From positions 11,780,001 to 11,844,000 of the forward strand of contig NC_086111.1 of assembly GCF_963921235.1 (NCBI RefSeq): DNA of 64,000 nucleotides, given 5' to 3'. The notes beneath the pieces are model-generated. The model was not told the DNA's origin. It saw nothing but the letters and a program-made list of their open reading frames with translations, and did no database searches. Every line of letters begins with the position of its first letter. Positions within the stretch are counted from its first letter, which is position 1. Of the stretch, positions 1-61,554 are shown in pieces. Position numbers and translations under genes: made by a program. Source of the stretch: Mobula hypostoma (taxonomy: Eukaryota).

Positions 1-859
1 ACTGTACAAACAGAAATTTCATACGTGCCAGGAACAGAATTGGGTAGCCATGTTAATCAAAAGTAATAAAGTCCCCACAATGGACAACACAGCCAAAGTA
101 ACAAAATAAATTTCACAATATGAATTACCAATGAAATAATTAGGAACCCTTGAGCATGTCATAAGAAGGGAAACATTAACCTCAAGGCAACTAAACCAAG
201 ACAAATATTTGTTTGGCATGCTTAAAAACAAACTGTTCTAGGAAAATGAAAACTTGGCATTTTTCAGAAGAGCTATGTTTTTTACCTGGAAATATATGAA
301 TAGATAGCTTTGAAACAACCATCTATTTCTTGAAAAAGTGTAATTTCATTGTATGAATCCTTAATGGCCAAAGCCTCAGAATGTACCACAAAGTGTTGTC
401 CAAGCAGCCATGGAATATCTACCTACAAAAGTGCCAGCAAGTGATTGTCAAATTAAAAATCATTGTAGTGTTCAGAGTACACAGTACAGATCAACAATTA
501 AAAACACTGTATTAAGCAGTTGGTGGGGGGGGGGTGTAGGAGAGAGAAGGGGGGAGGAGGAGGATTTTAAGAAACTTTACAAGGAGGTAGAAACAGAATG
601 CTAGGCTTCAATCAACCAGAATTAATTTAGATTGACACAAGAGCCATAATGCCATTTTGTTAACTGCATGAAATACACAAAATACATTAACAAATCAGAG
701 ACTGCCCATGGCATCATTTGCTCACAAAATTATATTGAGAACCTAAGAGTATGACATAGTGCCTTGGGAATGGCCACCGTAAAGCTATCTACTTCAATGT
801 GATTGGGAACTATAAGAAAGCATAAACCCATTACCCAAGGATTTGACATTATGCCAATG

Positions 860-11129: not shown

Positions 11130-11950
11130 TATTGCCGATGACACTACATTGACGGCCTTATCTCAAACAATAATGAGGTGGCCAACAGGGAAGAAATCAT
11201 CTCTCTGACACAGTGGTGTCAAGAAAACAACCTCTCCCTCGATGTCGCAAAAACAAAGGTGCTGGTTGTGGATTACAGGAGGAATGGAGACGGGCTAACC
11301 CTTATTGACATCAATGGTCTGGGATTGAGAGGGTAAACAACCTCAAGTTCCTCAGCATCTACATCACCAAGGACCTCACATGGTCTGCACATACCAGCTG
11401 TGTGGTGAAAAAAGGATAACAGCGCCTTTTTCACCTCAGACAGTTGAGTAAATGTGGTATGGGTCCCCAAATCCTAAGAACTTTCTACAAGGGCACAATT
11501 GAGAGTGTACTGGTACTGACTGGCTGCATCACTGCCTGGTATGGGAATAGTACCTCCCTCAATCCCAGGACTCTGCAGAGTGTGGTACGGACAGCCCAGC
11601 ACATCTGTAGTTCTGAACTTCCCATGATGTAGGACCTTTACAAGAACAGGTGTGTAAAAAGTGCCTGTAGAATCATTGGGGACCCAAGCCATCCCAGCCA
11701 CGATCTATTCCAGCTGCTACCATCTGGGAAGTAGTACCGCAGCATAAAAGCCAGGACCAACAAGCTCTGGGACAACTTTTCCACCAGGCCATCAGACTGA
11801 TGGAACTCACGCTGACTTGAGTGTACTCTATATTACATTGATGGTTCTATTTATTACAAATTATTATAAATGTGCAGACTGCACATTTAGATGGAGACAT
11901 AACATAAAGATTTTTATTTCTTACTTCCTTCACGTACATGAGGAGTAAAG
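11130..11950 (+). mobile_element. Rex1/Babar-type LINE RT/3' fragment
   Basis: ADDTT..., ILRTFYKGTIESVL..GCITAWYGN. Confidence 0.75.
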
Positions 11951-15812: not shown

Positions 15813-16096
15813 CATTGCTATTTATTTCTCAGCATTTCTTCACACTCTTTACAATTCTCAGTTGCAAGATCTCACCTATATTCCGGTTTTGTAGATCCTA
15901 GATTACAGATAATGCATCTCAAAAGACAAAAGTTAAACTTTCACATTCAAAAACTTGCATAAGTTTTGTTGTATCAAAATAACAAACTATCTCGATAAAT
16001 TAGAAACAATTAACAAACAATAATTCCATCTTCCAAATCTAATGGAAATTCCATCAGAAAAATGGCTGGTTCCAAGATTCAAAATTACTCATTTAC

Positions 16097-16285
16097 CTTG
16101 AGCTTGACATGAAGGCCTCCTTTCGATCCCATCATAATAGCTGAACCATTTGTAGTTATCATGGCCATAGACTGGAGGCAGATTTGGTGCTCAACATAGA
16201 ACTTCTTTATAGATTTGTACAAGGATACAGCATCAGATTTACCATCCAGATAAAGCAGCTTTATAAATTTCACTTGCAGCTCAGT
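16097..16285 (-). CDS. hAT-derived gene exon E (second catalytic motif region)
   Basis: tttttcatgtAG|ACT, phase 0. TELQVKFIKLLYLDGKSDAVSLYKSIKKFYVEHQICLQSMAMITTNGSAIMMGSKGGLHVKLK resembles the hAT TDGAxxMxG motif. Donor AAG|GTAAAT, 189 nt. Confidence 0.85.
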
Positions 16286-18836
16286 CTACATGAAAAACAA
16301 AACTAACATTTACCTATAATTGAATGTGCACTTTTATTTTACAAAAGACACTGCAAAAACTGCACTTCGAGCTAAAATTTACAGAGATGGTAAATTGCAT
16401 TTATGGAATCAGCTGACAAAGAAATCAGACGGGGCAAAGTGGATCTTAGCTTATCTCACTCACATGTCCCATCTCCAATAGTGCAGCACTCCCTCGCCAC
16501 TGCAATGGAGTGTTCCAAATATCTGTGTTCAAGTTTCTAAAACAGAACTTGTATTGATAACCTTCCAACAAGACACGACAATTATAAATATGATGGTTAG
16601 AATTATTCAACCATTGTTGGGCAGGGAAAGGTTTAGAATCCCAACTTGAGAAAATGCAAAAAATGCTTCCAGGCAGGAAATGTGGATATATTGAAGATAT
16701 AACTAGATTACAGGTCCAGAAGAGACGATGGGTCAAGTTCACATATTTACAGAATCAAATGACAAAATGAATTCCAAAGCAGAAACTTAAGCTTCGCTCA
16801 AAAACTTATTGTATATTTTTTTCTGAATGTGTGACAGTAATATACTGTAGAAAATAGCAGCTTGGTTAAACAATTTAGTACACAAATTCTAGGTGGCTTC
16901 AGTAAATATAAATATAGATAGAAATAATGTTAAACCAAAGAGATCAAGTGAGAAATAGATTAAGGAACATGTACACATTATTAGAAACATCAAATAATTG
17001 TAAACACTCCTACACACGCAAAACATTCAAAATACTTTTCACTTAGCTGAAACTTAGACATGCATTAGAATTAGAAACTAAAGAGCATTCTACAGCCAAA
17101 GTTGAAGGAAAATTACAATTATTTTGTTTTTGGAAATATGCATGCTCAAATTTAGAGAAAGAAATCAACCATCCAGCTTTATGGGAAGGCTTGATTAAGA
17201 AAGACAGCAAGTATCTCCAAAAATATCTATATAAATTAGTATTTCCATACCAAGATAACAAAAGTAACACAAGGACCATATTGAAGATCTTCACTGAGAG
17301 ATAAACTGTTGGCTGCTATGCTTTTCATAACTAAAATCATAGTTCAATGATCTTTGAAAGCACAATTATACTCAAGTGTGACTGGCTGCATAACATGCTT
17401 TTTCGATAACAAAGAGCAATCGGAGGGAATAAAGGCTGCAGCAGGGATTTAGCTATAACTTGGCAAAACTTTACTTATAAAGGAGTGCAAGGTCATATCT
17501 TATTGTGAGAAATCTTTCAGAAGCAATAATCAGAGAAGAAAGCCACTGCAGAGTTGTTGAAGGCAAATTATACTGAACAAACTGTAAGAATTTTGGTTAA
17601 GGGGATAGAAAAGGTTGAAGAGATTACTATATTGATTAATCACATGCATTTTAAAAATGGGTTGGATGAAATCCCCACAGAAGGCTGGTAAGGAAAGCTG
17701 AGGCCCTTGAAATACAATTAGAAGCACAGTACTATGTACAGAAGAACAATGAATAATTTTTTCAGAATAGAGGTGGTAGCAAATATGATCCAAGTTGTCC
17801 ATGTTTGAGCATTGATTTTTTCATGTATTCATGACTTGGACATGGGTGTATAGAGTAGAACTTCAATTTGCAGATGGCACCAAAGTTATAGCAAAGGGTA
17901 GGATATTATGTTTAGACATAAATAAGCCTGCAAAATAAGATAACTGACAGATGATATTTACTACATCTGATTCTCCGAGGCCTCTGTTGGTCAGAGACGA
18001 CCATGAATATTGCATCCTAGCTACCTAGATACACAAGTCTGGACTGTATGATATGGAGAGCAAGCTGTTGGCCATGCAGCAAGCTCTCCCTCTCCATACA
18101 TCTGATGAACCCAAAGGTACAGCAGAAATAGATACAGTTTTAATACAAGAATGCATGAAATAATAAATTTCCAATTTTATCCAACATAGGTCTTCTTGTT
18201 GAGAAGTATGCAAATTAAGTTAAAAAAAAAGGCAACTACTTCATGTCACAGCACTAAAAAGTATGAGCAAACAGGGGGGGGGGACTTGCATATGTTTATA
18301 AATAATTGAAAGTGCCATTACACATTTGAAAACTCGAGCTTCATAAATGGAAGCATCAAGTACAATAATAATCCTGATGAAGGGCCTCATTCCCTTGCAC
18401 GCAAAATTTCAAGGTGACAAAGGATAAACGTAATCCAAAAATCCAAATCAGTCATACGAAAACTCACTAAAAGGCTCCAAATTACAGTTTTGGAAGAAAA
18501 AAAGCCATGCTCACCTCTATGCTGTATGTTGCTTCAATTGCCATTTGCCCAGTTATGACCAGTGACACTTAAAATAGCTTTAAATTTGATACAGTTTTAA
18601 AAAATAAAATTACATTTTTCTTCAAACACGATTGTAATTGAATGAGAGAAAAACAAACTATAATCTCGAAGAACAACCCTGTTCGGAAGGTTGGGGGGTG
18701 GGGGGCACATTACATATCACAACCACAGCTGGCATAAAGTAGCATCAATTCAGTACATCCAAATGCTTTCAGACCCAACACTGCATCCAATGGCAGACAA
18801 GGTCAGTGCAAGACCGCAGTAGTACTCGCTGTAAAG

Positions 18837-20008
18837 CAGCGGTCCCCAACCACCGGGCTGCAAGGAAACGATATGATTTGGCGATAGGAGTCAGCTGCAC
18901 CTTTCCTCATTCCGTCACGCCCACTATTGAGCCATTACGCACGCGAGGTCATTAACCACTTGTCATCCGTGTCAGCGCGGGAAGGAGATCAACTCCTCGA
19001 GCTTGCAAATGACGGCTGGCTGAAAAGTATGTTTGATATAACATCTCTGCCAGCATTCCGGATCAAAGTCAAGGCTAAATATCCTGAGATAGCCACGAAA
19101 GCACTGAAAACGTTGCTTCCATTTCCAACATATCTCTGCAATGAATGCAACGAAAACTAAATCGCGGAATAGACTGGACATAAGGAACCCCCTTCGAGTA
19201 TCGCTGTCTCCCACCTGCCCTCGATAAGACCGTCTTGTTGCAGGAAAACAAGCCCAGGGCTCCCACTGATTCAGTGATATTGGTGCGTTGCAATGATTTT
19301 ATATTTTCATATGAGGAAAATATGCGCTGTGTGTTTGATATCCAAACGTTACTTAAAATGTTATGATGCTATTATAAGTGACTTACATAACCATGTAACA
19401 ATTACGGCATGGAAACAGGCGATCTTGCCCCTTCTAGTCCGTGCCGAACGCTACTCTCACCTAGTCCCACCGACCTGCACTCAGCCCATAACCCTCCATT
19501 CCTTTCCTGTCCATATACCCATCCAACTTTTCTTTAAATGATAACGTCGAACCTGCCTCTACCACCTCTACCGAAAGTTCGCTCAACACTTCAAGCTCCC
19601 CTGTCCTCCCCAATATTTGTCTTATCGCTATATTCATGCGAGGAAAATATGCGCTGTATGTTTAATATTAAATTCGTTAGATAAACCCTTTTAGAAACGA
19701 ACTGAAGTGTATCAGCCACTTATCACCTATATTCCGGTCGTGATTAACACACACCCCCGCCGCCAACAGAATCGGCAAAAACAATTTTTAAGAAATCGGC
19801 ATGTAAACGCATGCGCAAGTTACGCATGCGCTGGTGCCCGCGCAAGGCTTCATGGTCATTGAAGTCTTTCTTAGGGTAAACCCAACGTATTTGACTGCTA
19901 CTCTTGTACGTTGGCAACCATACCGCACCCACCCCCGGGTCGGCCAGTCTGCAAGAATATTGTCAATATGAAACCGGTCCGCAGTACGAAAAAGGTTGGG
20001 GACCCCTG
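18837..20008 (+). mobile_element. Non-autonomous hAT (Charlie/Buster-type) element
   Basis: TIRs cagcggtccccaacc / ggttggggacccctg. Perfect 8-bp TSD ctgtaaag (18829-18836, 20009-20016). Dimerisation-domain remnant YPEIATKALKTLLPFPTYLC. Confidence 0.92.
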
Positions 20009-21010
20009 CTGTAAAGAGTTATGGGGCAGCATGACCCTTGCATTTCCCCCGTCATGGGTTTGGGAGAAGCTTCAAGCGAAGTACTTAACATTTTTGCAAA
20101 GCCTGTAAATAGTTACAAAAGGTAACTTCTCCCAAAAACACTGTAAATTCTGGATTGATAAAGGAACGTGGACACCAGAGAAAATCTTGCAAATCCAGAA
20201 AATAATCTAGAAGTGGCTTTTCCATAGGTCTAAAGCAAAAACACAAAGATTGGCCAACAGATATCATACAAGGAATACCATGTGGCTTGCTTAAACATGC
20301 TGTAATTTCTATATAGTCGCAGCACAAATCCATATACATCAATAGTGGCTTACGCTTGATAGAGAGCCATATTCATGCCTTGCTCTTTATAAAAATGGTG
20401 TTTTGTCTGCCTGAAAGTTACAGACAAGCTGAACAATTTGCAATGACAAAGCGTTTGGATTATATTTATTTACTGTACAACTCTCATAACAATGTATAAT
20501 GACAAACTTTTTGCAATCTTCACAACATTTGCACAATAGATGACAACCCTCTGGCAGAGTTCAAACTCTGCACCACAAATACTAATCAATTTTTACAATA
20601 CCAAATACATAATCCCACTGGAACCTCATCACAGATAATGCATCAAATAACCTCTTCCTCGATGTCAACAATACAAAAAAGATGTTATCAATTTCAAGAG
20701 AACTCTAATCATTCACACCCCTCTTTACATCAGTGGCACAGCAGTGGAAACAGGAGTTTCAAACTCCGAGGAGTGCACATCTCACAAAACCTTTCATGGT
20801 CCCAGAATACATTCTGCACAAATCAGGAAAGCTCACCAATGTCCCTACTTTCTGTAGAGGTTGAAGAGGGCTGGACTATGCACATCTATATTCACCTCAT
20901 TCTACAGATACACCTTCAGAGCATCCTAACAAGCTACACAGTACAGAACCTGCAGTCCAGCAGACAGGAAGGCTCAATAACAGAGTCAAAACTGGCCAAC
21001 CTTATCATCA

Positions 21011-23450
21011 AAGTTGCTGGTGAACGCAGCAGGCCAGGCAGCATCTCTAGGAAGAGATACAGTCAACGTTTCAGGCCGAGACCCTTCGTCAGGCTTAACT
21101 GAAGAAAGAGCTAGTAAGAAATTTGAAAGTGGGAGGGGGAGGGGGAGATCCGAAATGATAGGAGAAGACAGGAGGGGGAGGGATGGAGCCAAGAGCTGGA
21201 CAGGTGATTGACAAAAGGGATACGAGAGGATCATGGGACAGGAGGCCCAGGGAGAAGGAAAAGGGGGAGGTGGGGGGGGGGAAGCCCAGAGGATGGGCAA
21301 GGGGTATAGTCAGAAGGGCAGAGGGAGAAAAAGGAGAGGGAGAGAAAGAATGTGTGTATATAAATAACGGATGGGGTACGAGGGGGAGGTGGGGCATTAG
21401 CGGAAGTTAGAGAAGTCGACGTTCATGCCATCAGGTTGGCGGCGACCCAGACGGAATACAAGGTGTTGTTCCTCCAACCTGAGTGTGGCTTCATCTTTAC
21501 AGTAGAGGAGGCCGTGGATAGACATGTCAGAATGCGAATGGGATGTGGAATTAAAATGTGTGGCCACTGGGAGATCCTGCTTTCTCTAGCGGACAGAGTG
21601 TAGGTGTTCAGCAAAACTATCTCCCAGTCTGCGCCGGGTCTCGCCAATATATAGAAGGCCACATCGGGAGTACCGGACGCAGTATATCACCCCAGCCGAC
21701 TCACAGGTGAAGTGTCGCCTCACCTGGAAGGACTGTCTGGGGCCCTGAATGGTGGTAAGGGAGCGATCCTTGCGGAAAGCGGGGGGGGGAGGGGGGAGGG
21801 AAAGATGTGCTTAGTGGTGGGATCCCATTGGAGGTGGCGGAAGTTATGGAGAATAATATGTTGGACTCGGAGGCTGGTGGGGTGGTAGGTGAGGACCAGG
21901 GGAACCCTATTCCTAGTGGAGTGGCGGGAGGATGGAGTGAGAGCAGATGTGCGTGAAATGGGGGAGATGCGTTTGAGAGCAGAGTTGATGGTGGAGGAAG
22001 GGAAGCCCCATTCTTTAAAAAAGGAGGACATCTCCCTCGTCCAGGAATGAAAAGCCTCATCCTGAGAGCAGATGCGGTGGAGACGGAGGAATTGCGGGAA
22101 GGGGATGACATTTTTGCAAGAGACAGGGTGGGAAGAGGAATAGTCCAGGTAGCTGTGAGAGTCAGTAGGCTTATAGTAGATATCAGTAGATAAGCTGTCT
22201 CCAGAGATAATGACAGAAAGATCTAGAAAGGGGAGGGAGGTGTCGGAAATGGACCAGGTAAACTTGAGGGCAGGGTGAAAGTTGGAGGCAAAGTTAATGA
22301 AGTCAACGAGCTCAGCATGCGTGCAGGAAGCAGCGCCAATGCAGTCGTTGATGTAGCGAAGGAAAGGTGGGGGACAGATACCAGAATAGGTTCGGGACAT
22401 AGATTGTTCCACAAAGTGGGAGGAGCCAAAGGAGAAATTAAGAGTAAGGACTAATTCCGCTAGACAGTGCAGAATTCCGCCCCAACGGGATCCCACCACT
22501 AAGCACATCTTTCCCTCCCCGCTCCACTGCTTTCCACAAGGATCGCTCCCTACACAACTCCCTTGTCCATTCGTCCCCCCCATCCCTCCCCACTGATCTC
22601 CCTCCTGGCACTTATCCTTGTAAGCGGAACAAGTGCTACACATGTCCTTACACTTCCTCCCTTACCACCATTCAGGGCCCCAGACAGTCCTTCCAGGTGA
22701 GGCGACACTTCACCTGTGAGTCGGCTGGGGTGATATACTGCATCCGGTGCTCCCGATGTGGCCTTCTATATATTGGCGAGACCCGATGCAGACTGGGAGA
22801 TCATTGTGCTGAACACCTACGCTCTGTCCGCCAGAGAAAGCAGGATCTCCCAGCGGCCACACATTTTAATTCCACATCTCATTCCCATTCTGACATGTCT
22901 ATCCGCGGCCTCCTCTACTGTAAAGATGAAGCCATACTTAGTTTGGAGGAACAACACCTCATATTCCATCTGGGTAGCCTCCAACCTAATGGCATGAACA
23001 ATGACTTCTCTAACTTCTGCTAATGCCCCACCTCCCCCTTGTACCCCATCCGTTATTTATATACACACGTTCTTTCCCTCTCTCTCCTTTTTCTCCCTCT
23101 GTCCCTCACTATACCCCTTGCCCATCCTCTGGGCTTTCCCCACCCCCCCCCTTTTCCTTCTCCCTGGGCCTCTTGTCCCATGATCCTCTCATATCCCTTT
23201 TGCCAATCACCTGTCCAGCTCTTGGCTCCATCCCTCCCCCTCCTGTCTTCTCCTATCATTTTGGATCTCCCTCTCCCCCTCCCACTATTAAATCTCTTAC
23301 TAGCTCTTTCTTCAGTTAGTCCTGACAAAGGGTCTCGGCTGAAACATTGACTGTACCTCTTCCTAGAGATGCTGCCTGGCCTGCTGCGTTCACCAGCAAC
23401 TTTGATGTGTGTTGCTTGAATTTCCAGCATCTGCAGAATTCCTCGTGTTT
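21011..23450. mobile_element. Penelope-like element with inverted two-arm structure, inserted in a Rex1-type LINE fragment
   Basis: Minus arm 21011-~22475 has RT motif RYINDC and LPFLDL plus GIY-YIG. Plus arm ~22476-23450 has the GIY-YIG ORF 22697-23023 (VIYCIRCSRCGLLYIGET). 16-bp TSD gccaac(c/a)ttatcatca at 20995-21010 and 23451-23466. Confidence 0.92.
21061..21096 (-). ncRNA. Minimal hammerhead ribozyme motif (GUU site)
   Basis: CTGACGA AGG GTCTCGG CCT GAAA CGTT GACT. Stem I is imperfect. Confidence 0.65.
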
Positions 23451-27835: not shown

Positions 27836-29265
27836 CAGGTTTCCCCCGCCATCCGAAGGTAGAGCATTCCTATGAAACGGTTCGTAAGCCGAAATGTCGT
27901 AAAGCGAAGAAGCAACTACCATTCATTTATCATGGAAAAATTTGAGCGTTCGCAGACCCAAAAATAACAAACCAAATCATACCAAATAACACATAAAACC
28001 TAAAATAACACTAACATATAGTAAAAGCAGGAATGATATGATAAATACAAAGCCTATATAAAGCAGAAATACTTCTCTACAATCATTGCCACACTGTTCT
28101 CGGTAGCGAAAATCTCACGCAAGCGCTGTCGGCAGAAACACTCTCCAGTAACCTTTAAGCTATGAAGCTGCCAAATCATACCAAATAACGCATAAAAATA
28201 CACAGCCTATATAAAGTAGAAATAATGTATGTACAGTGTAGTATCACTTACCGGAATTGGGAAGACAGCGCAGAGCACACTGATGATGGTGTGTTAGGCT
28301 GAGTCGTCAGAGGTTGGGGTGGTGCAGTGGCCCCCACCCTCCGGGCCGCCGACCAACACCGATCCGCGAAGCATGCAGGGGTGCAGCGGTGGCCGGGTTG
28401 CAGAGAATGCAGCGGTAGCCGGGACACACCCAGCACATCTTTAAGAAAAAAAGCCGAAATAAACAAGCTAATTAATTAGGTGCCGCCCGGCACGTAAATG
28501 TCGATCCAGATCAGAGGCGACGCGGCCCGGGGGTTGGGGTGGTGGGACACTGGGGTGTCATCTCGTCGTCTGTTTCCATCAGGGCAGGCAGGTCATCTTC
28601 TTCTATGTCTGCCTGCCTCAGTGTCGAAGGTCGAGGTTTGTCGTCTGCTGTGGCTGATGTGGAAGGCTTGCTTGACTGCTTAGCCTCGTGCATTTTTCTA
28701 TCATACAGTTCTTTGTAAGCACTCAAACCATCTTGCAAATTTGCCCTAAACCAACTTACCCTTTCAAAATTAAAGTCGTACTTTATCACTGCAGCCAAAA
28801 TCTCATTCAATTGCTTCACGTTCAGTTCCTGGACAACTTCATTTTCAGCCCACTCGCTACTGCATTCGGTTTCGATTGTTATCCTTTCCTCTTCCAATTG
28901 CATCAGCTCTTCATCTATCAGTTCTTGGTCATGGGATGCCAAAACCTCTTCAACATCATCTTCGTCAACTTCCACAAGCCAAACTCACTTTGTCCTTACT
29001 TCGTTCACCACGATCGAAACGCTTAATTATGTCCAGTTTTACGCTAAGTGTAACACCCTTACGAGCTCTTTTAGGCTTTTCCGATACCTTAGAACTCATC
29101 TTGCAAACTGGTGCTCACGTGTTTAAGCAATACCAGCGACAATGTAGTTCTGAATCTGGGGGAGAGCGGCTGCTTGGGGCGCGCGCCGCTTTTTCTTCGC
29201 GCACTGCCTTTTATCGTAACAGTGAGGTTTCATAAAGCAAACGTTCGAAAAACGGGGGACACCTG
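27836..29265 (-). mobile_element. Tigger/pogo-type non-autonomous DNA transposon
   Basis: TIRs caggt(t/g)tcccccg, flanked by TA on the left and CA on the right. ORF EVDEDDVEEVLASHDQELIDEELMQLE is typical of Tigger C-termini. Confidence 0.85.
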
Positions 29266-30017: not shown

Positions 30018-30225
30018 CTTTGCAAGAAATTTTGTGTACATCATCAGGTGCTTTTCAGTGGCAATATCTGAACTTTCATCAACAATCAGAGAATGAACCC
30101 TTGCTTGCTTTAATGCCATTAGGTTTTCTGCCTCAACAGGTTCATTGAGAGCTGCAACAAACTGCCAGCTGTAATTTTTACTTCTGTGGCGTCTACCCAA
30201 TGATAGACCATGGCTCTCTATTAAC
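30018..30225 (-). CDS. hAT-derived gene exon D (first catalytic Asp motif)
   Basis: tttcattttAG|G, phase 2. LIESHGLSLGRRHRSKNYSWQFVAALNEPVEAENLMALKQARVHSLIVDESSDIATEKHLMMYTKFLAK contains the hAT SLxxDE(S/T)xD motif. Donor AAG|GTAAGT, phase 0. Confidence 0.87.
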
Positions 30226-30301: not shown

Positions 30302-30577
30302 CTGTGTAGGCTTTTAGCTTTGGAAATGGGCAACTGTTCCTTGATTAACCACAGAACATTTCTGAGGAGGTGAACAACATCCTCTTTTGTGTCACTACTG
30401 AGAGCATCAGTAAATAGTGCCTTCTCCCAGTTGGCTGCACTTATAGGCACCGACAGTGCCTGAAGATGTTCTCTACTGGCCAGATGGCGAAGCAAGTAAT
30501 CTTTTTTCCACCCACCTTGTGGCTGAGACCTACCACTTGTCCACTCTGTATCAGTAATGCTATTATCAACACAAACT
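30302..30577 (-). CDS. hAT-derived gene exon C (rest of TTF-type zinc finger)
   Basis: ttctgttttAG|A, phase 2. VCVDNSITDTEWTSGRSQPQGGWKKDYLLRHLASREHLQAL...LPISKAKSLH(R). Completes CxxC...HxxSxxH. Donor AG|GTAAAG, phase 2. Confidence 0.85.
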
Positions 30578-30690
30578 CTAAAACAGAACATATCAAAAAA
30601 AAGTATTTTGTGCATAATCTCAACAATGAATGTTCAAGTACTGTTGATAAATATTTATGCTTACTTGCTATTTAAATACTTCATGCTTAC

Positions 30691-30923
30691 TTGCAATAGC
30701 ACTTGTTCTGCTGCTCATCATATAGAAAACAAGAGAGCCGTGGGTCCATTTGAATCCACGATTTGAGCCCACAGTTACTTCCTTTACACTTTTTCATTAT
30801 TCCATAATCGAAGTAGGAACTTTCCTTCAGTTCATCATCAAAACAACTGGCATAATTATCACTTTTATCTTTGTCTTCATCTTCATCAATTTCATGACCA
30901 TTAGCACAATCCCCTTCAGAATT
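30691..30923 (-). CDS. hAT-derived gene exon B (acidic linker + start of TTF-type zinc finger)
   Basis: tttcctttgcAG|AAT ... NSEGDCANGHEIDEDEDKDK...WIQMDPRLSCFLYDEQQNKCYC(K). Donor AA|GTAAGC, phase 2. Confidence 0.8.
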
Positions 30924-31013
30924 CTGCAAAGGAAAGATGGGGAAATTGCATTTCAAAAGATCACTTTTAAAACTGATTTAAAAGCTTTTGTTAAAAAAAA
31001 TCAAAATTATTAC

Positions 31014-31067
31014 CTCATGTGATCTTGTAGTGTTACGGTGAAACAATTCTAAAATAGAGCGATGCAT
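31014..31067 (-). CDS. hAT-transposase-derived gene, putative first coding exon (whole exon 31083-31014)
   Basis: Acceptor catttttccAG at 31085-31084. ATG at 31067 gives MHRSILELFHRNTTRSHE. Donor GAG|GTAATA, phase 0, in frame with the next exon after a 90-nt intron. Confidence 0.6.
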
Positions 31068-34000
31068 TGTATGTCCATCCAAACTGGAAAAATGTGAAAC
31101 ATGGAAGTTAAAAATAAAATACGAAATGCTTAAATAAAAGAATGATACTTTTTAAATGTGTTTTTATCCTTTCTCTTATGGTGAATTGCTTTTCAAATAA
31201 TCTGATTTATTTCACCTGCTGGCTTTTCCACTAATAACTCAACACAGATATGGACTCCTAAATAAAAAGTACTTGAAGCTTTCCATTCTTACAATTCAAA
31301 ACCAATCCTAAATGAGTTAAACTAGAAGCATAGTAACCATAGACACTCATTGTCGGAAAGCTACAAAATTGGAACCATCCATGTAATATCAACAAGACCT
31401 AAGTTTCGAAATGAATTCCTGGTATCTAATCATTACATATAGCAGAGTTGGAAACTATGAAAACTAAAACACACACAATTCTATCTATCTGAACAAAATT
31501 AAAACAAAAACAAAAAACCTGTTTGCTACCTTTATTCAATCAACTAAATTTTCCATTATTTAACCACATACTTCCAAACACTAAAATAAACTTTCACAAT
31601 CAATTTCATCACAATTCTTCACAACCCTTGCACAATATCTTATCACTTACCATTAATTATTAGCTGCCATTCTCTACACCACTGGAACGTCTCATTCTTT
31701 ACCCTAAATTTCAAGATCTGCCATGTTCACTGAAAACCTTAAAGCTTACAATGAGTGCATCAAGTTTTATGGTGCCTTCAAATCCTTTACAATCCTGCAA
31801 TACTATTTAAGTTTCATTGAAAGGAATAAAAACACATTTAAAAAACACTATATATTATTTTCCTCTTACCTGTCAAAACTTAACTTGCACCCTTTTAGCG
31901 TCACAACTGCACATCACAACCAGATGGTCCTTCCACAGCCTTGCTGAGTTCCTCCAAAGTCGCTTATCTTGTCAACGAATACATTTGTCGATTCTCATAT
32001 GCTTCAGCAGTTTTCCCCATTGTAGCTGCAAAGCTTCCTTAAGTCCCCAACACCACCAAAAAAGATCAAAACTAAACAACAGTTCGAGCCCTGATTACAG
32101 CTGACCGCAGCCTACATTGTAAGATAAAATTCACAACTCATTTTCAATACAGGCAACAAGGAACTGCAAGGACAAGTGACCACAAAACAATGCTTCACAA
32201 AATGTACGCATTAATCTGTTTGCAGCAACATTGTCCTTATCTACACTGCATTTTATGCCAGAAAGCCAAGATTTAAAGCTCTGACATGCATATTTCCCTC
32301 TTCTATTCTAGCATCCCAAATGCATTTTCCCCATGCATTCAGGGAGTCAAGAAAATCTACAAACTTTACTGTGCTCACGGACTTCTTCATCAAGTTATGG
32401 TATTGTTACACTGTTTGTAACTATATGTTATAATTATGTGGTATTGTCAGTTTTTTCAGTCTTGGTTTGTCCTGTGTTTTGTGATATCACACCGGAGGAA
32501 ATAATGTATCATTTCTTAATGCATGCATTACTAAATGACCATAAAAGAGGACTACGCGTCTTCATAATCATAAATCATAAACAGAAAAATGGGCCATTTA
32601 GTCATAATTTTGGGTTTTCACTGATATTTCTCCTGTTGTTAATTATCACTACTGGTGGTCACAAAAACCATTTGAGCTACAACTTAGAATATTAGGTAGG
32701 CCTAATTTCAAGAATACATTTCTGGATCCGAACTCACTGAATAATTGCTGAAAGAAACTTAAGTTTCAAACTATGTTGTCTGTTCCCACATTATAAGAAT
32801 GTACTTGCAATTAAAACAGAAAAAGCTGGAAAAGCACAGCAAGTCATGAAATTCCTGCTGTGTTTCCAGAAGTTTAATGCTTCAGGCTGAAGACACTGAA
32901 ATTCAGAAGGATAATTGACCTGAAACAACTGTTTCTCTTTCCACAGATGCTACAGATTGTTTCTAGCAAATATCCAGCAACTGAAGTGTTTTTTTTAAAC
33001 TTTTTGGTACATTTCCCTACTTGTCTCCCACCCAAAATCTTGATTTGAAAACATATTGCATATCAAATCTACAGTGGTCAAGTTGCATATAATTTTCCAT
33101 ACATGCAATGCAAGATATATTTATTGGAGTTAAAACCTTCAAATACAGCTTGCAGATTACAGGAGATAATATTAAAAATTGCAACCTACAATTACAAATA
33201 TCCCACAAACTCCCAAGACTGATTGGAACGATTGTCCTGTGCCTCTTATCAAGCGAGGAATGAAATCATAGCTGTCCTCATATAATGTGGACCAGAACTG
33301 ACTTACTGGTTTAATTTTCAGAAGCAAACAGCATCAAAACTAAAAAAATTAGCAAGATCATCTCAAATATTCCCAGATACTAGCTAACACCTGTACTGCA
33401 CGGTCTATTATGATACATTTATTCCAAATTTAACCTAAAAACTTTGATGTCAACCTGAACAAGAAATGAATATAATTGTAGAGTGAGAATTAAACTTTTT
33501 CAAAATCAGTGTAATGACCACACCTGCAGAATGTGTCTACCCATTTAAATCAACCCACCAGGCCAACACAAGAATGTGACCATTGAGACTGCACAATAAC
33601 ACAAGTGCAGCTTTAAATGAAAAAGCACCAAAGTCTTCTGACAGCCAACTGCCAGATGTACAGAGCAAAGGTGAGTAAATGGAATTCAAGTACAGATCAG
33701 ATATGATCAAAAAGAATCGCCATAGGCTTAATGGTCTGAATGACACACACTTTTTACATGGTACATAGAAAAACAAGACAGTTACTTTTCAGGAGCAGAG
33801 AAGTCTAGAGCCTAAAGGAGACAATTACTGTGAAATGGGCTGCAAACTACAAACTGAGGTTTGCCACTAATGAGAATAGTGAAGCCTCAATTTTTTTAAA
33901 CTCTTCACTAGCATCATTCAATTATTTTAGCAGAAAATTTAATTTTATTAGAAGTTCATCTAAACTATTTTGAGAACAATGATTGTAAATTAAAACCATA

Positions 34001-37000
34001 GGAATCCCATTAGAGAATTACTTGGGTTATTTGATCTGACACCATATTCACTGATCAACAATTTATGATGCCACATCTGCAATACAGGTCAAGGTTTTTT
34101 TAAATTCAAGAACTGAAAAACCAGTGGAAAAGCATGCCAATTAAATCTCCAAATATGATTTTTTTCAAAACAGAACTATTACTTCAAATCATAAAGTCCA
34201 TGCTGCACCTTCAAAGTACTTGTGCTATCATGAAACACGTTATGCAGTAACTAAAGGTCCTCCTTTAAACAGATTAATGGCAAGAATTGCGCAAGTATAA
34301 ATCACAAATAACTTTCCTTAAGCCCATGCAATTGTCTCTAATTGAACATAATTGACTTTCATCTCACAAAAAAAACTTCACGTTATGCTTCCTTTATATT
34401 TAATCTCTGTTATAATTGTATTGACAAAAGCTTTATCACTATGTAGTGATAAAAGTTAAACTCCAGTTTCCCCATGCAAAACTGTCTTTCAATAGATCAC
34501 AAAGAGTAAAGTTCATCATCATTATCTAAAACTCAGTGCCAACAGTTCAAGCTACTGGTCATCAATATTTCCAGTATAGATTATGCTAGTATCAAAGTAT
34601 AATTTTACTCCTCAACAACTATCTCCAGTCCTTTTAATGGCATCTTCTGGGGCTGGAACAATACCTCATGATGCCCAAATAATTACGATTGCAATATATT
34701 ACAAAAGGTAGTGTGATTTGCCAGTATTTGTCTTTAATCATCACTTCAATGTGCTATTCAGCCATGCTAAACATGCACACAAAAATTAGGAGCACTTGAT
34801 ATTCATCAGAATACGTAACTGCTTCTCCTTAACTAAAGGACACAAGGAGCAACCTAGCACCCTTACTGATCTGATGCCACCTCAATAAAATCCAGCTGAG
34901 ACAAGAAATCAATCTAAGGAATTGTATACTCAGTTACTCGCGAGTGGTCATGTTAATAACAGATTTTTAAAAATCCAAGAACAGCATGGAAACTAGTGCA
35001 ACACAAAAGACACAAGAAATATGCGAACTGAGAAAAGCAAGCTAAAGCAATTAGGAAACATCTTGGAAAGTAAACTGCTGCTGTATCAGATAATTTAGGG
35101 AGGCAGTTATCGTTCTAATAAACTGAAAATTGGGATTAAAATATACCAACTTTAGGACAACCTCCATACACCTCATTCCAAGTTTAGTCTTCAATAATAG
35201 CAACCAACTCCTTATTGACGAGAGGTTCATCATATAAATACATAGACTACAAAGGGCAAGTTTCTTGAAATTAGTGCAGAAGAACTGAACCTTGGCTCAA
35301 TTTCACAGTTTATGTATGTGTATTTCCAATGGCAGAGCATATTCTGAATATGCAAAATACATTAAGCAATTTCAATGAGAATGCTCATCTGCAAAAACTG
35401 TTTAATGTTGTTCCAAATACAAATCCAAACCAGGAATACATTAGTATTAGAGAAATTTACAGCAATGATCGAGTGGTAACAATCTCAATTTTGTGCTTGG
35501 AGAGCAAAGTGAGTATAATTGTTTATTGAGCAATTCAAGCATTTGCTGTCACCTAGAAAAATCCACGTGAACTAAAACATAAATTTAGTCGAAAAAATCA
35601 CACACCAGAGACATAATATTCCCCTCTCCATTACGATTCACGTACTCTGTGGAATTTTGTTTACAGAGCCACTGAAATCCTCAAAATTCTTGCTCCAAAC
35701 AAACTTTTCGACTGACATAGTATAGCTTGGCAATGGCAAATATGAACCCGGTATACAATCGTTTAACATACTGTCCTCTGCGTTTGACATTTAGTCCATA
35801 CCTTTAAAACTAGCCTGAATGAGAATCACAGAATGAATAGTAAACTGGCAATGATGTGTTATCTCCGTAACACCTTTGCCGTTGGCATTTATAACCCAGG
35901 TCTTTGAGGCTCTTCAATAATAACCGAATGTTACCAGATCTCCTAAATTTCACACCATAGCAAAGATTCATAGTTTTGTACCAGCTGATGTTGGGGCCAT
36001 AGAGCACCTGACCTCTAAGTAGTATTTACTAATGGCAATTTAAAACTACTTTAAATCTGCTTGAAGTTGGAAGTGGAAAAATATTCAACAAAAACAAAAA
36101 GATGAAGATATGTAGATGGAAAACAGCACAGTTTGGGAAAAAAAAAGTTAAAATACGATTTAACAGAATTTTAAATGTTCACAGAACAAAAGGAGAATAC
36201 TAAGTTAAATCAATTTAAAACATGCAATAATAGCCAACACTTTGGTAAAATACATTTAACATGCATACATTTAACAGTAAAGCAGGGGTCAATATTCACA
36301 ACTGCCCAGTAAATTCAGGCAGCAACACCTTAAATTACCTTTCATATTTTAAGAAGGTCAGCCAGTTACTACTTTATACCAAAGATCAGATATTCCATTC
36401 ATTAAATCACCAAAGGGATGGGTAAGTGGGGAGAGGGACTGGGGATGATAGGTTTTCACTTCAGTAGGAGTAGGAAATAAGCAGAGAACAGGAATCGGAA
36501 AATTTCCCCTTGAATTACTCAGTATCATGAACTGGCTGATTATTTTTTGTTCAGGAAAAGAGGGAATTTGCATTAAAAGACACATTTTCACCCCCACTTT
36601 AAAGTTTTAACCGTTACATACTATGATTTTTTGGTCAAAATTTAACATCATCATCATCTGGATTTTTAATTCTAAGAGAGTGAACAATGTTGGCACTATT
36701 TGCAGGCATCAAAATGTTAGAAGTAGATAACTACAAATATGAATATCTTTACAATAGCATCTGCTGAGCCCCATCAGATGCACTATGGACTTAACTTGGT
36801 AAAAGGTGTGTGGAAATTGAAGGGGGTGTTCACTCCCATAGAATAATGCAGAATACCTCACCAGTGACCCAAGAGTTCCAGGCAAACGCGTACATTCGTG
36901 CAAAGGGCTACCATAACTCACTTTGGCCCATAGCATTTGTGAGTTATGGGCAACTCACTGTCACCAGTGAGATATCCTCAATAAATACAAGATTCCTATC

Positions 37001-39109
37001 CATGGCAGACAAATTGATCCCAATTGTTATTAACTATTAATTCCAAAAACTTTCACCAGGATTTTAATTCCAGTATCTACTTGTGATTATTTTTTAAACC
37101 AAACTGATCTAAAAGTAATACATCTTTACCATTCATGATAACACACAATCACAAAATCTTTGTATCAAGCTCCAATGAGTAACATAGTTAAAAAAGGCGC
37201 AAGCCAGCAATGCAAATTAAATAAAATTATAACTCTGAAATAAGTTAATAGAACAAAATTTTAAAACATCAGCAAAAACTGATTTTCTTTGATAGACAGC
37301 AACTAAGAAAATTAACTTGCAAGATGCAGAGAAATACAAAATAAATACATGCTAAACATGCTTCTTCCAGCTTCAATTATTTGTATGTGTTGACAGAACA
37401 CAAAAGCTCTATACTAAAATAAGGGGCAAGACTAATTCAAGCACAGTGTTAACCAAGTGCTTTCAAAAATTCCAACACAGCAACTGAACTTTCAGAAATT
37501 TGTAGAGTGTACACTCTCTTAAGAATTCATGCAGTATCATAATGTAAATTTGGACATCAATACCCCAGTACAATTTCAACCTGAACAAATCCCTAATTAT
37601 TAATCAATTAGATCTTTGACAAATTCGGGAATGCCTTCAATTTAATTCTCCGGATAAACTGTACCCAACTGTAGTATCAATAGCCACTACTGCAAGATTG
37701 TGTGAACCAGGGTCATTGAAGTAAAAAAAAATCTATGATCTGCACATCATCTGCTTCTACTTTTAACAATATACTATTGGGATATCACACTGGTGACAGT
37801 AAATAAAACGTGTTTCTTTCACACAAAGTGCAAGTATCATAATTCACAAACACTATGCATAAGTGAGCTCTTGGTAAAATATTTCACAAATGTATATGTC
37901 ATTAACAGTAACTTCATTCCTGATTGGACTGAAATCTTATTACAAAATAAATTTGATACACCTGTTCTCTCAATTGCAGATGTGAGTATATATTTAAATT
38001 GTGAACACCACAAGCTGTGATAAAAGGTTTTCAGCTATGCAAAACAAATATGTTTGCTGTAATCCAATAGTAAAGGTACCATTTGTACAAGTGGATATAT
38101 TAAAGTTGACTGTATTGATTCTTTGACGCACTGCAATTTAGATTTAAGCATATCATTAAGTGCATCTCCCATGTGCCATTGTTCATTCTCTCAATACAAC
38201 TCGCAATTGCTTTGCATACAAGATCATTTATGAAAGGCAAAACCAATGTCACAAAGTCGAACACATCACACGTAGAATCAGAATATAACAGTTATGAAAC
38301 AAAATGTTCAAAACACTAACAAAAAGAAACTTGTCTGACAATTTCCCAGCTTTCTTTCATTTCTGCAAAAAGTACTCACTGTGATATCCTGCTCTTTCAC
38401 ACAAGAATAGATCAGTGTCATTGGCAAGTTACCCAGCAGAAATTATGTCCATAGTTTTCCCATATAGAACCACATTCAAAACCAGACAAAATACATAGCC
38501 CACATTGACCAAACTCAAGAGTATGCAAAACATGTCAAAGACACTTAACTTTGCCAGACTTTCATATCTCCCATATTTTGACCATCACCTAAACTCAAAA
38601 ACAATGGGACCACAACAGCCCCCAAAAACCAAGGGAGCACAAATCAAAATCCAATGCACTCCCACCCCATAGCAGCAAGTCCTCCAACTGAACAGCTGGC
38701 TTCAGGAGCCTAAGCAACAAAACACCAGGTCAATGGAACAACAATATGCCCCAGAAACACCTCAACACGGCATGTTTCCACTCAAGTTCTAAACCTATCA
38801 AGACTTCTCATGGTCTACAGGAGCACCCAATACCTTAATCCCAAATACATTAATCCTAAGAAACCTACAGACAACTACAACAACAAGCTCAGAAAATACT
38901 CACACCACCAAAGACCCAAGCATCCCAAACCAATGCTCTAGAAAATGCTAGATCAACTACCCCAGGGCAACTGAAATATTCCCAGGTAATCCACTCCCAC
39001 AGCATGCCAACCCCATTAACTGATCCCTTTTATAACCCCCAGGTAACCCATTCTTACTGCAACCCAAACCCTACATATCTAGAGTACCTCCCCCATGATC
39101 CTCCCTCTG

Positions 39110-39560
39110 TACATCACATACACTGAGTAACCGCTCCCATCGTAACCCCCACACACACTGGGTAACCGCTCCCATCATAACCACACACACACGGAAACCA
39201 CTCCTATCGTAACCCCCACCAAACACACACACAGGGAAATCATTCCCATCGTAACCCCCACACACACTGGGTAACCACTCCCATCATAACACACACAGGG
39301 AAATCATTCCCATCATAACCCCCACACGCACTGGGAAACCACTCCCATCGTAAGCCTCACACACACTACTGGGTTAACCACTCCATTGTAACCCTATATA
39401 CACACACACACACAGAAACCAAGCCCATCGTAACCCCCAAAAAAACACCGGGAAACCACTCCCATCATAACCCCACACACACACACAGAGGGACACCACT
39501 CACATTGTAACCGCCCCCCCACACACTGGGTTTATACATACACACACACAGTAGCCACTC
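39110..39560. repeat. Minisatellite, ~33-38 bp unit, about a dozen degenerate copies
   Basis: Unit approximately cacacactggg(t/a)aaccactcccatc(g/a)taacccc with variable CA runs. Confidence 0.9.
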
Positions 39561-39599
39561 CAGCGTCCCCCTGACACCACAGACAGTCTTCAACCATCC

Positions 39600-40220
39600 C
39601 GTGCGGCCTCCGGCCCTGCAGCTACTAAACACTCGGAAAAGCTACAAGCACCCGAATCCTAAGGCAAAAACTGCGCCGGGAGCCAGAGCCCAGGGCCGGC
39701 ATCAGTACAGTGAGTGGGTGGAAGGGCCGCTCCACTGAATACTAATGTGATGCGCTGCTGCTCACCTCGTCCTTGCGGATGTACGATGCGGGAATGTAGC
39801 CCACCTCCCCGGTGCTGCTCTTGGACGCCAGCCACCAGTGCTGATTGCTCCGCTCCAGGATAACGAAGCTCTCGCCGGCCGTGAAGTGCAGCGAATGCGG
39901 CTCGGCCGAGTGGAAGGTGTAGAGGGCCCGGTACATGGCGGCAGTGGCCTCGGCCTTTTCGTCCGTTGGGCTCGCGCCGGCTTGCTTCGCTCTCCCGCTC
40001 GGGGGCTCGTGCTGCGCTGCGCTCCGCTCGGCTCGCGCTTCTTCCTCCTCCCCTTGGGCTCGGCGAACAGTACACAGTCCCCTGTAAACACTGCGGCTCT
40101 GACGTCCACGCTACGTGATTACGTCATACCTCACGCAACATCTTAAAGGGATGGGTCACTGTTCGGGAACTGTGACGCCCGTTGCTGTTCACCGAAGTTT
40201 AGCGGACGATACGGCTCTTT
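39600..40220 (-). promoter_or_regulatory. NCKIPSD: NCKIPSD CpG island and promoter
   Basis: GC/CpG-rich. Cluster of CRE/ATF-like TGACGTCC (40100-40107) and TTACGTCA (40119-40126), TACGTG (40112-40117), forkhead-like GTAAACA (40084-40090). Confidence 0.75.
39766..39936 (-). CDS. NCKIPSD: NCK-interacting protein with SH3 domain (SPIN90/WISH), exon 1 = N-terminal SH3 domain
   Basis: MYRALYTFHSAEPHSLHFTAGESFVILERSNQHWWLASKSSTGEVGYIPASYIRKDE closely resembles the NCKIPSD N-terminus (MYRALYAFRSAEPN...). Kozak-like GCCGCCATG, donor GAG|GTGAGC, 171 nt, phase 0. Exon 2 was not found in the window. Confidence 0.92.
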
Positions 40221-40244
40221 CCTGCCTAAAGTCCAATGGCATCC

Positions 40245-41780
40245 ATAGAAACATAGAAAATAGATGCAGTAGTAGGCCATTCGGCCCTTCGAGCCTGCAA
40301 CGCCATTCAGTATGATCATGGCCGATCATCCAACTCAGAACCCTGTACCAGCCTTCCCCCCATACCCCCTGACCCCCGTAGCCACAAGGGCTATATCTAA
40401 CTCCCTCTTAAATATAGCCAATGAACTGGCCTCAACAGTTTCCTGTGGCAGAGAATTCCACAGATTCACTACTCTCTGTGTGAAGAAGTTTTTCCTCATC
40501 TCGGTCCTAAAAGGCTACCCCTTTATCCTCAAAATATGATCCCTCTGGACTTCTGGACTTCCCCAACATCGGGAACAATCTTCCTGCATCTAGCCTGTCC
40601 AATCCCTTTAGGATTTTATACGTTTCAATCAGATCCCCCCTCAATCTTCTAAATTCCAATGAGTATAGGCCTAGTCGATCCAGTCTTTCATCATATGAAA
40701 GTCCTGCCATCCCAGGAATCAACCTGGTGAACCTTCTTTGTACTCCCTCTATGGCAAGAATATCTTTCCTCAGATTAGGGGACCAAAACTGCACACAATA
40801 CTCCAGGTGTGGTCTCACCAAGGCCTTATACAACTGCAGTATTACCTCCCTGCTCCTGTACTCAAAACCTCTTGCTACGAATGCCAGCATACCATTCGCC
40901 TTTTTCACCGCCTGCTGTACCTGCATGCCCACTTTCAAGGACTGGTTTACAATGACACCCAGGTCTCGTTGCACCTCCCCTTTTCCTAATCGGCCACCAT
41001 TCAGATAATAAAGCAACACACATCAAAGTTGCTGGTGAATGCAGCAGGCCAAGCAGCATCTCTAGGAAGAGGTACAGTCAACATTTCAGGCTCGCAGGGT
41101 CCTGACGAAGGTTCTCGCCCCGAAACGTTGACTGTACCTCTTCCTAGAGATGCTGCCTGGCCTGCTGCGTTCACCAGCAACTTTGATGTGTGTTGCCTGA
41201 ATTTCCAGCATCTGCAGAATTCCTCGTGTTTGCATTCAGATAATAATCTGTTTTCCTGTTCTTGCCACCAAAGTGGGTAACCTCACATTTATCCACATTA
41301 AATCCACCACTCATGTGCCATGAATTTGCCCACTCACCTAACCTATCCAAGTCACCCGACATCCTCTTAGCATCCTCCTCACAGCTACCACTGCTGCCCA
41401 GCTTCGTGTCATCCACAAACTTGGAGATGCTGCATTTAATTCCCTCGTCTAAGTCATTAATATATTGTAAACAACTGGGGTCCCAGCACTGAGCCTTGTG
41501 GTACCCCACTAGTCACAGCCTACCATTCTGAAAAGGTCCCGTTTATTCCCACTCTTTGCTTCCTGTCTGCCAACCAATTCTCTATCCACATCAATACCTT
41601 ACCCCCAATACCGTGTGCTTTAAGTTTGCACACTAATCTCCTGTGTGGGACCTTGTCAAAAGCCTTCTGAAAATCCAAATATACCACATCCACTGGTTCT
41701 CCCCTATCCACTCTACTAGTTACATCCTCAAAAAATTCTATGAGATTCGTCAAACATAATTTTCCTTTCACAAATCCATG
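40245..41780 (-). mobile_element. Young 5'-truncated CR1 LINE
   Basis: RT motifs DFQKAFDKVPH, YINDL, KFVDDTK, LYKALVRPHLEYCVQFWSP. Tail atagaaacatagaaa. Interrupted at 41012-41232. Confidence 0.93.
41012..41232. mobile_element. Short fold-back Penelope-like derivative with 14-bp TSD
   Basis: Inverted arms around a plus-strand hammerhead motif (41098-41133). TSD cattcagataataa at 40998-41011 and 41233-41246. Confidence 0.9.
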
Positions 41781-53344: not shown

Positions 53345-54065
53345 AATCCTGCTCTCATGACTCTACCCCTTCCCCACACGAAACCACCACAGTGGGCTTC
53401 ACAGCTGAACAGGTGAGAAGATAGCTGAAATGTCTCAACCCAAGCAAGGCTGCAGGACTGGATGGTGTCAATACCAGGATGCTCAAAGCCTGTGCCCCTC
53501 AGCTATGTGGAGTACTTCGCCATGTCTTCAACCTGAGCCTGAGGCTCCAGAGGGTTTCTGTGCTGTGGAAGACGTCCTGCCTCGTCCCTGTGCCGAAGAC
53601 GCCGCACCCCAGCGGCCTCAATGACTACAGACCGGTTGCATTGACCTCCCACATCATGAAGACCCTGGAGCTGCTCCAGCCTATGGTTAGGCCACACTTA
53701 GATCCCCTCCAGTTCGCCTACCAGCCCCGACTAGGAGTTGAGGGTGACTTCTCCAGTGTGTTCAACACCAACCACCCTGCTCTGCTGGGGGAGAAGCTGA
53801 CAGCGATGCAGGTGGATGCTTTCCTGGCGTTATGGATTCTTGATTACCTGACTGGTAGACCACAGTACGTGTGTTTGCAACAATGTGTGTCTGACAGAGT
53901 CATCAGCAGCACTGGGGCTCCACAGAGGACTGTCTTGTCTCCCTTTCTCTTCACCATTTAGACCTCGGACTTCAACTACTGCACAGAGTCCTGTCATCTT
54001 CATAAGTTTTCTGATGACTGTAACAAAAACCAATTTCCCCTGGGATCAATAAAGTATGACTATGA
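53345..54065 (+). mobile_element. Rex1/Babar LINE RT fragment
   Basis: LKACAPQLCGVLRHVFNLSL...VPVPKTPHPSGLNDYRPVALTSHIMKTLE...GAPQRTVLSPFLFT. Confidence 0.9.
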
Positions 54066-61365: not shown

Positions 61366-61554
61366 ACTAATTAGTCCCTGAAGGATTCGTTTGTTAGAGG
61401 AACAGAAAGGAATTGCTGTGGCCTAGACGGGATTCGGGGTGCCAGGACATCTCGAATCCTTCAGGGACAAATTTTTAAGTAGGAAGGTGAGCAGCCAGAG
61501 GTCATGGTCCATATAGGTACTAATGACGTAGGTGACGAGGTTCTGCAAAGAGAG

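Follow-up and report, generated by a model that had tools for sequence, protein, structure and literature searches.

Fusions between host genes and transposases are a recognized route to new genes. In the ERCC6 (CSB)-PGBD3 case of primates, an intronic transposase lies on the same strand as its host gene and host exon(s) are spliced to it, and both the parental transcript and a stand-alone transposase persist. PGBD3-CSB has been cited as a precedent for the host-transposase fusions of tetrapods, such as KRABINER, SETMAR and ZNF862 (Cosby et al., bioRxiv 10.1101/2020.05.07.082677). Their birth route consists of insertion in a host gene, capture by alternative splicing and purifying selection on the transposase part, and hAT elements, at 23%, are among the commonest donors in the tetrapod survey (bioRxiv 10.1101/2020.05.07.082677). 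That survey is limited to tetrapods, its partners are mostly of the KRAB type, and neither SH3 nor NCKIPSD appears in it; the old fusions usually retain only the fusion transcript (bioRxiv 10.1101/2020.05.07.082677). Here we analyze a stretch of 64,000 nucleotides (nt) from the ray Mobula hypostoma (contig NC_086111.1, positions 11,780,001 to 11,844,000; hereafter the window), in which a hAT-derived gene is nested within the first intron of NCKIPSD, the gene of an SH3-containing adaptor that regulates actin nucleation.

A first-pass annotation of the window had noticed that NCKIPSD exon 1 is in phase with the second exon of the transposase gene (exon B). It had proposed that the transposase relies on the NCKIPSD promoter, that exon 1 may be joined to exon B to produce an SH3-transposase fusion, and that a 70-nt exon (exon A) may switch between the products. 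Re-translation of the window confirmed all its coordinates and frame arithmetic, and the comparison with orthologous loci largely supports its interpretation of a fusion or a shared promoter. We put the probability at about three in four that a tamed hAT gene in NCKIPSD intron 1 uses the NCKIPSD promoter and exon 1, with exon A setting the outcome.

Results and Discussion

Skate mRNAs join NCKIPSD exon 1 to the transposase gene

Transcripts that link the two genes were found in the little skate, Leucoraja erinacea. Its 746-amino-acid (aa) isoform, with an MHRS… start, is encoded by six Logan contigs, each from a different sequencing run. Since each contig carries the whole open reading frame (ORF) contiguously, these contigs represent spliced RNA. 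All of them map to the Leucoraja genome at 99-100% as 12 exons, in the order NCKIPSD exon 1 > A > B > … > K, and NCKIPSD exon 1, together with its 5' untranslated region (UTR) and start codon, comes first. The junction into exon A, …AAGGACGAG|TTTGGATGG…, is in 6/6 contigs the exact equivalent of splicing from 39766 to 31083 in the window, so that a junction predicted by the first-pass annotation has its counterpart in six independent mRNA assemblies. Four of the six contigs have their 5' ends within 7 nt of one another, at 127-133 nt before the NCKIPSD ATG, and the 5' UTRs align to positions 40035-39766 of the window. Two contigs are preceded by an oligonucleotide remnant that we take to be a template-switch-oligo (SMART) tail, indicating a true cDNA 5' end. 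We consider splicing of NCKIPSD exon 1 into the tamed transposase gene to be close to certain in skate and likely in the ray of our window.

The consequences for the reading frame can be read directly from the window. As the first-pass annotation had calculated, joining exon 1 to exon A yields a 73-aa ORF, which ends at the TAA at 31035-31033 and overlaps the transposase ATG at 31067; the tail of this SH3 peptide reads …FGWTYNASLYFRIVSP. A 9-codon upstream ORF in exon A (31078-31049) overlaps the same ATG. The transposase AUG is the third one in such an mRNA. The first is the NCKIPSD start (context GCCGCCAUGU), which opens the 73-codon ORF, and the second (GGAUGG) opens the 9-codon ORF; both contexts are good, and both ORFs end past the AUG at 31067. 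The six skate mRNAs have the same arrangement. With two overlapping ORFs ahead of the transposase AUG, stand-alone translation from the exon 1-exon A mRNA is expected to be inefficient.

Organization of the locus

NCKIPSD exon 1 and all nested hAT exons of the window are on the minus strand, and the nested gene, with 12 exons, lies entirely within NCKIPSD intron 1 (Table 1). The coding sequence of exon 1 (39936-39766; 171 nt, 57 aa) ends in phase 0, with the donor GTGAGC. Its product, recognized by Pfam as an SH3 domain (SH3_1, E 5e-13), matches residues 1-55 of human NCKIPSD (PDB 9i2b_H, E 7.5e-20) and shows 100% identity with the NCKIPSD models available for Mobula hypostoma and M. birostris. 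These models continue past the SH3 domain into a SPIN90_LRD domain; within the 64-kb window, no NCKIPSD exon was found besides exon 1. The transposase gene is itself interrupted by 11 introns, of which some measure 11-16 kb, and exons A-F are all bordered by AG/GT. By tblastn, the protein encoded by exons A and B of the window is identical to the M. birostris model. Exon C is left out of some isoforms (P0001, P0053).

A 656-aa RefSeq model common to M. hypostoma and M. birostris begins with MKYLNSK, at 30664-30690 on the minus strand. This start matches an ATG just 3' of the exon B donor, and an alternative donor, GTAAGC, is found 27 nt further on, which suggests an alternative, frame-breaking 5' splice site of exon B at 30664-30690.

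Table 1. Features of the nested locus in the window, with positions counted from its first nucleotide.
Feature	Position	Strand	Remarks
CpG island / NCKIPSD promoter	39101..40400	-	GC 0.56; CpG observed/expected 0.78; 75 CpG
NCKIPSD exon 1	39766..40050	-	5' UTR from ~40050, inferred from the skate transcription start
Far-upstream alternative first coding exon	53850..53957	-	phase-2 donor; repeat-like; tblastn 97% over 36 aa
Exon A0	31870..32070	-	CpG-poor; phase-2 donor ..GACAG|GTAAGA at 31870; tblastn 31967-31872
Ultraconserved intron stretch directly 5' of exon A	31084..31170	-	94-100% identity in four species including Callorhinchus
Exon A	31083..31014	-	70 nt; acceptor ...TTTTTCCAG|T; donor GTAATA; ATG 31067-31065
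Exon B	30923..30691	-	acidic stretch and first half of zinc finger; phase 0 start, in frame with exon 1
Exon C	30577..30302	-	second half of zinc finger (C17orf113/TTF-like) and helices
Exon D	30225..30018	-	start of RNase-H-like core with first catalytic Asp (IVDESSD)
Exon E	16285..16097	-	TTNGS motif, Asn at the place of the second catalytic Asp
Exon F	422..286	-	remaining six hAT exons and NCKIPSD exon 2 lie beyond the window start

The nested gene is an old, domesticated hAT derivative

Apart from one hAT element protein, all proteins recovered by word-indexed searches, whether the query was a single protein or a profile of nine species, were chondrichthyan, their sources being chimaera, sharks, skates and rays. 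An exhaustive phmmer search with exon D gave one strong match, LOC103176722 of the chimaera Callorhinchus milii (763 aa), at 88% identity, and all later matches were weak and fragmentary, with at most 51% identity. The best match outside the chondrichthyans reached 51% over a 66-aa fragment, and the nearest ones were multi-copy 'ZNF862-like' and 'KIAA1586-like' proteins of newt and snail. Neither the single protein, nor the profile, nor the exhaustive exon D search found an ortholog outside the cartilaginous fishes. In NCBI the chondrichthyan orthologs are named 'uncharacterized', 'ZNF862-like' ('zinc finger protein 862-like') or 'NCKIPSD isoform X1'. The nesting and splicing described here explain why a transposase-like protein carries the last of these RefSeq labels in several species.

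The hAT ancestry was supported by several comparisons. The hAT element protein P0049, which carries DUF4371 and Dimer_Tnp_hAT, matched the Callorhinchus protein over 526 aa (BLASTP E 3e-19), and precomputed PF27073 matches are present on the orthologs. An Atlas feature search scored 0.98 with 222 shared features, its ten best matches were all hAT/DUF4371/FAM200-ZBED5 clusters, and exon C was placed with the C17orf113-type zinc finger. Pfam gave no match with exons B, C and D taken singly. In the full Callorhinchus protein, Dimer_Tnp_hAT was detected at E 0.0012 and 19 bits, below the 21.4-bit cut-off, with no match in Mobula; the C-terminal region aligns with the Dimer_Tnp_hAT stretch of P0049.

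The positions of the DDE triad are assigned provisionally, from the pairwise alignment with P0049 and from known hAT motifs. The first catalytic Asp is retained as D255 (VDES). The position of the second is occupied by N321, with TTNGS aligned against YDGA, and this Asn is invariant in nine species. The third residue, the Glu of the ER-FS motif, is an Asp in elasmobranchs. The triad thus appears broken, and the protein is very probably catalytically dead. AlphaFold2 run on the nine-row alignment gave a mean predicted local distance difference test score (pLDDT) of 32, unusable for placing the catalytic residues, and the nine-ortholog profile found only a chance match (E 0.6) among PDB sequences.

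The gene has been under strong constraint. The ratio of nonsynonymous to synonymous substitution rates (dN/dS) was 0.05-0.07 for exons C-F (810 nt) in all ten species pairs, the AG/GT splice sites are at identical positions across the compared species, and in an alignment of nine proteins the identity to that of Callorhinchus is 87-90%. In Callorhinchus, NCKIPSD exon 1 (2228-2398), the 12 hAT exons (10001-21771) and NCKIPSD exon 2 (30588) follow one another on one strand, and the gene occupies the same position within NCKIPSD in the window and four other species. This shared synteny contradicts the view that the orthologs are recent horizontal copies. With single-copy, syntenic orthologs and purifying selection, the nested gene is a host-domesticated one: an old, intron-rich hAT derivative that was in NCKIPSD intron 1 before the chimaera-elasmobranch split. 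The split took place about 400 million years (My) ago. Being single-copy and strongly constrained, the tamed gene must serve some role in cartilaginous fishes.

The 1-in-3 phase match and the lack of any significant Pfam hit beyond the sub-threshold Dimer_Tnp_hAT might suggest that the exons are remains of a decaying transposon, with a fusion that is a product of chance phase and annotation artefact. This view is refuted by the dN/dS values, the 87-90% protein identity, the 12-exon structure and synteny kept from ray to chimaera, and the full-length spliced mRNAs in six runs.

In-frame fusions are annotated in three species

The first-pass annotation had further predicted that splicing from 39766 to 30923 would be in frame. 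In the window, exon 1 followed by exons B to F stays open for 405 aa across the junction IRKDE|NSEGDC, and junctions of this type are annotated in two other species. In a RefSeq product of Rhinoraja longicauda (P0056, 784 aa, 'NCKIPSD isoform X1'), exon 1 is joined directly to exon B (…IHKDE|NAEGDC…), and the same is seen in a product of Stegostoma tigrinum (P0060, 783 aa; …IIKDQ|NAEGDF…). The Leucoraja isoforms X1 and X2 (P0046/P0062) are in-frame fusions of another design: they include an extra 71-nt exon before exon A, with canonical splice sites (L008 4099-4169, ~0.9 kb downstream of exon 1), which changes the phase and thereby puts exon A in the frame of the transposase. No alignable counterpart of this exon is present in the window, the intron alignment beginning only downstream of it. 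All four products hold an SH3 domain together with the hAT core. In all three species, the fusion shares its start coordinate with a 722-724-aa NCKIPSD product (SH3 and SPIN90_LRD), and so the parental product coexists with the fusion in the same loci.

Compatible phases of exons 1 and B would by themselves arise by chance in one case out of three. The weight of the case therefore comes from the orthologous transcripts and models. It is plausible that an SH3-transposase fusion protein is made and is of consequence.

Exon A is a candidate switch

Exon A is 70 nt long and follows the phase-0 end of exon 1, so its inclusion shifts the frame. The stop that the exon 1 frame meets in exon A is kept in all five species compared. 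All 70 of its nucleotides are identical to both skates, and 95-96% to Stegostoma and Callorhinchus. Together with ~90 nt of the preceding intron (31170-31021), it is 100% identical between the ray and the two skates and 94-98% identical to shark and chimaera. For comparison, identity to the chimaera Callorhinchus is 53-94% for the coding exons B-D and 29-66% for the adjoining intron. The alignment of ray with skate has no change in exon A and one in 60 flanking intron bases. Set against a ray-skate synonymous divergence of ~0.23 elsewhere in the nested gene, this near absence of change indicates constraint on the nucleotides themselves. No known RNA family in Rfam matched the stretch 30600-32400; a snoRNA-like hit, attributable to chance, scored 19.9 bits where 50 are required.

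Exon A, which the first-pass annotation had proposed as a switch, is the most conserved piece of the locus, and we infer that it may be a regulated alternative exon. With its 70 nt better conserved than the neighboring coding exons, it offers a concrete candidate for such a switch.

A second first exon and the question of an independent promoter

The CpG island of 1.3 kb at 39101-40400 is the sole one from 31 to 40.4 kb, in agreement with the first-pass statement that the only upstream CpG promoter in range is that of NCKIPSD. A conserved first exon of the nested gene's own, A0, which the first-pass annotation had not noted, lies ~0.8 kb upstream of exon A, so that the NCKIPSD promoter is not the sole possible source.

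The existence of A0 raises the alternative that the nested gene is independent, with its own CpG-poor promoter at A0. Splicing of exon 1 into it would then be a non-productive by-product, the stand-alone protein alone would be functional, and the SH3 fusion would be without a role. In favor of this, A0 lies in a conserved block (~32070-31821), is 87-94% identical to shark and chimaera and, with its flanks, 87-98% conserved from ray to chimaera. Its phase-2 donor puts exon A in the transposase frame, and it supplies the start codon of every Callorhinchus (MTLKGCKLCFE) and Chiloscyllium (bamboo-shark) isoform. The two overlapping ORFs that precede the transposase AUG in exon 1-exon A mRNAs point in the same direction. 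However, 6/6 full-length skate mRNAs begin at the NCKIPSD transcription start and none uses A0. In batoids, A0 contains an in-frame TGA and lacks a usable ATG, and in the window it has no ATG at all, while fusion isoforms are modeled in three species of two orders through two different exon paths. We find it unlikely that the nested gene is independent to this extent. A0 is nevertheless the best candidate for a 5' end independent of NCKIPSD, and an own promoter probably coexists with the shared NCKIPSD promoter.

Conservation runs ~50 nt past A0 into the intron, to 31821. The nucleotides of A0 and the first 50 of the intron are constrained in batoids although A0 cannot code there; the candidates for what is preserved are a promoter, a UTR element or splicing. 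Use of A0 as an internal exon after exon 1, through an acceptor-like site (TTTGCAG) at 32026, was considered and rejected, as the frame meets a stop and exon A would be read out of frame.

A further alternative 5' end is found in the RefSeq 'NCKIPSD isoform X1' of M. birostris, in which an exon at 53957-53850 is followed immediately by exon A and NCKIPSD exon 1 is left out. This exon lies 14 kb upstream of the NCKIPSD promoter and encodes the first 36 residues of the M. birostris model, from which the window differs by one residue (Q>H).

A model for the shared locus

The model that we favor, use of the NCKIPSD promoter and exon 1 by the tamed hAT gene, can be outlined as follows. An ancient hAT transposon would have inserted in sense orientation into NCKIPSD intron 1 in an ancestor of the living cartilaginous fishes, and would have become a single-copy, intron-rich and catalytically disabled host gene. 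This gene would be expressed largely or partly from the NCKIPSD promoter, with exon 1 (5' UTR and SH3) joined to the transposase exons and not to NCKIPSD exon 2. If exon A is included, the SH3 frame would continue for 16 codons into it and stop, leaving a 73-aa SH3-only ORF; the transposase ORF (MHRS…) would begin 32 nt before this stop and be reachable only via leaky scanning or reinitiation. If exon A is skipped, as in the Rhinoraja and Stegostoma models, or if the 71-nt exon is added before it, as in Leucoraja, the SH3 domain would be in frame with the acidic, zinc-finger and hAT-core protein. A0 would provide a third 5' end, independent of NCKIPSD.

Several observations weigh against this model. 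The fusions of all three species are automatic RefSeq models, no Logan contig encoding these exact fusion proteins was found, and the assembled mRNAs show only the out-of-frame exon 1-exon A junction. RefSeq models from the genus of our ray, Mobula, have neither an exon 1-exon A nor an exon 1-exon B junction: that of M. birostris joins the far-upstream exon to exon A, and the 656-aa model has its start within the intron between exons B and C. A0 matches exon A in conservation, and in Callorhinchus and Chiloscyllium the coding sequence begins in it. In the sole isoform directly observed, the transposase AUG stands behind two overlapping, well-started ORFs, and the protein yield from it may be low. 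In Callorhinchus, finally, the ATG of exon A is an ATA. On the other side, the first-pass annotation had named two results that would speak against it, namely transposase transcripts starting at their own transcription start site and a lack of the exon 1-exon A and exon 1-exon B junctions. Judged from the orthologous transcripts and models, neither was encountered.

A stronger version of the model we offer only tentatively. One promoter and an ultraconserved 70-nt frame-switch exon might have been maintained for ~400 My to divide the output of the locus among NCKIPSD, an SH3-transposase fusion, and a free SH3 mini-protein accompanied by a tamed transposase that is translated poorly. If true, a dead hAT enzyme that has a zinc finger and binds DNA would, in the fusion, be linked to the ligands of an adaptor of actin nucleation. 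The host partner would then be non-transcriptional, and the fusion would be among the oldest host-transposase fusions whose parental gene is intact.

Other features of the window

A second CpG-island-like stretch lies upstream of NCKIPSD at 60801-61900 (GC 0.53-0.54, observed/expected 0.65-0.78) and may be the promoter of a neighboring gene. Two inverted retroelement copies are found on both strands within the D-E intron (21400-23450), and their ORFs contain a GIY-YIG-like motif (…VIYC.R.SRCGLLYIGET…) reminiscent of Penelope-like elements. A 157-aa acidic-rich open frame at 28514-28984 on the minus strand (…VDEDDVEEVLASHDQELIDEEL…) resembles the C-terminal tail of a pogo/Tigger-type transposase; it has no Pfam match and sits in a CpG-rich patch (28101-28800).

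Comparison with known systems

In the literature on NCKIPSD/SPIN90 with transposase and on host-transposase fusion, we found no description of a hAT locus nested in NCKIPSD. RefSeq already holds models of the fusion, which is apparently undescribed in papers.

Three known systems invite comparison. With the ZMYM1 / FAM200 / ZBED5 / C17orf113 / KIAA1586 group, the nested gene shares an RNase-H-like core (DUF4371 / FAM200-ZBED5_RNase-like) and a C17orf113-type zinc finger. Unlike that group, it is a gene of cartilaginous fishes only, heavy in introns and nested in NCKIPSD, with an exon D that is 88% identical to chimaera. With the tetrapod fusions of Cosby et al., the locus has in common the birth route and the hAT donor. 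It differs from them in its partner, the protein-interaction SH3 domain of a regulator of actin nucleation instead of KRAB, SCAN or BTB, and in the full retention of the parental NCKIPSD after a very long time. Host-transposase fusions would in this way gain an SH3 partner from an actin-regulatory adaptor.

The closest likeness is to ERCC6 (CSB)-PGBD3, where a same-strand intronic transposase is likewise combined with alternative splicing of an upstream host exon and retention of the parental gene. Several differences set the two apart. The transposase in NCKIPSD is a hAT and not a piggyBac, the host contributes its first exon alone, with one SH3 domain, and the nested gene has 11 introns of its own. 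In the NCKIPSD locus, a frame-shifting 70-nt exon would choose between a fusion and an mRNA of the upstream-ORF type. The nesting in chimaeras and elasmobranchs goes back ~400 My, against tens of My for CSB-PGBD3. A fusion or promoter capture common to chimaeras, sharks and rays would be very old, with the parental gene still in use.

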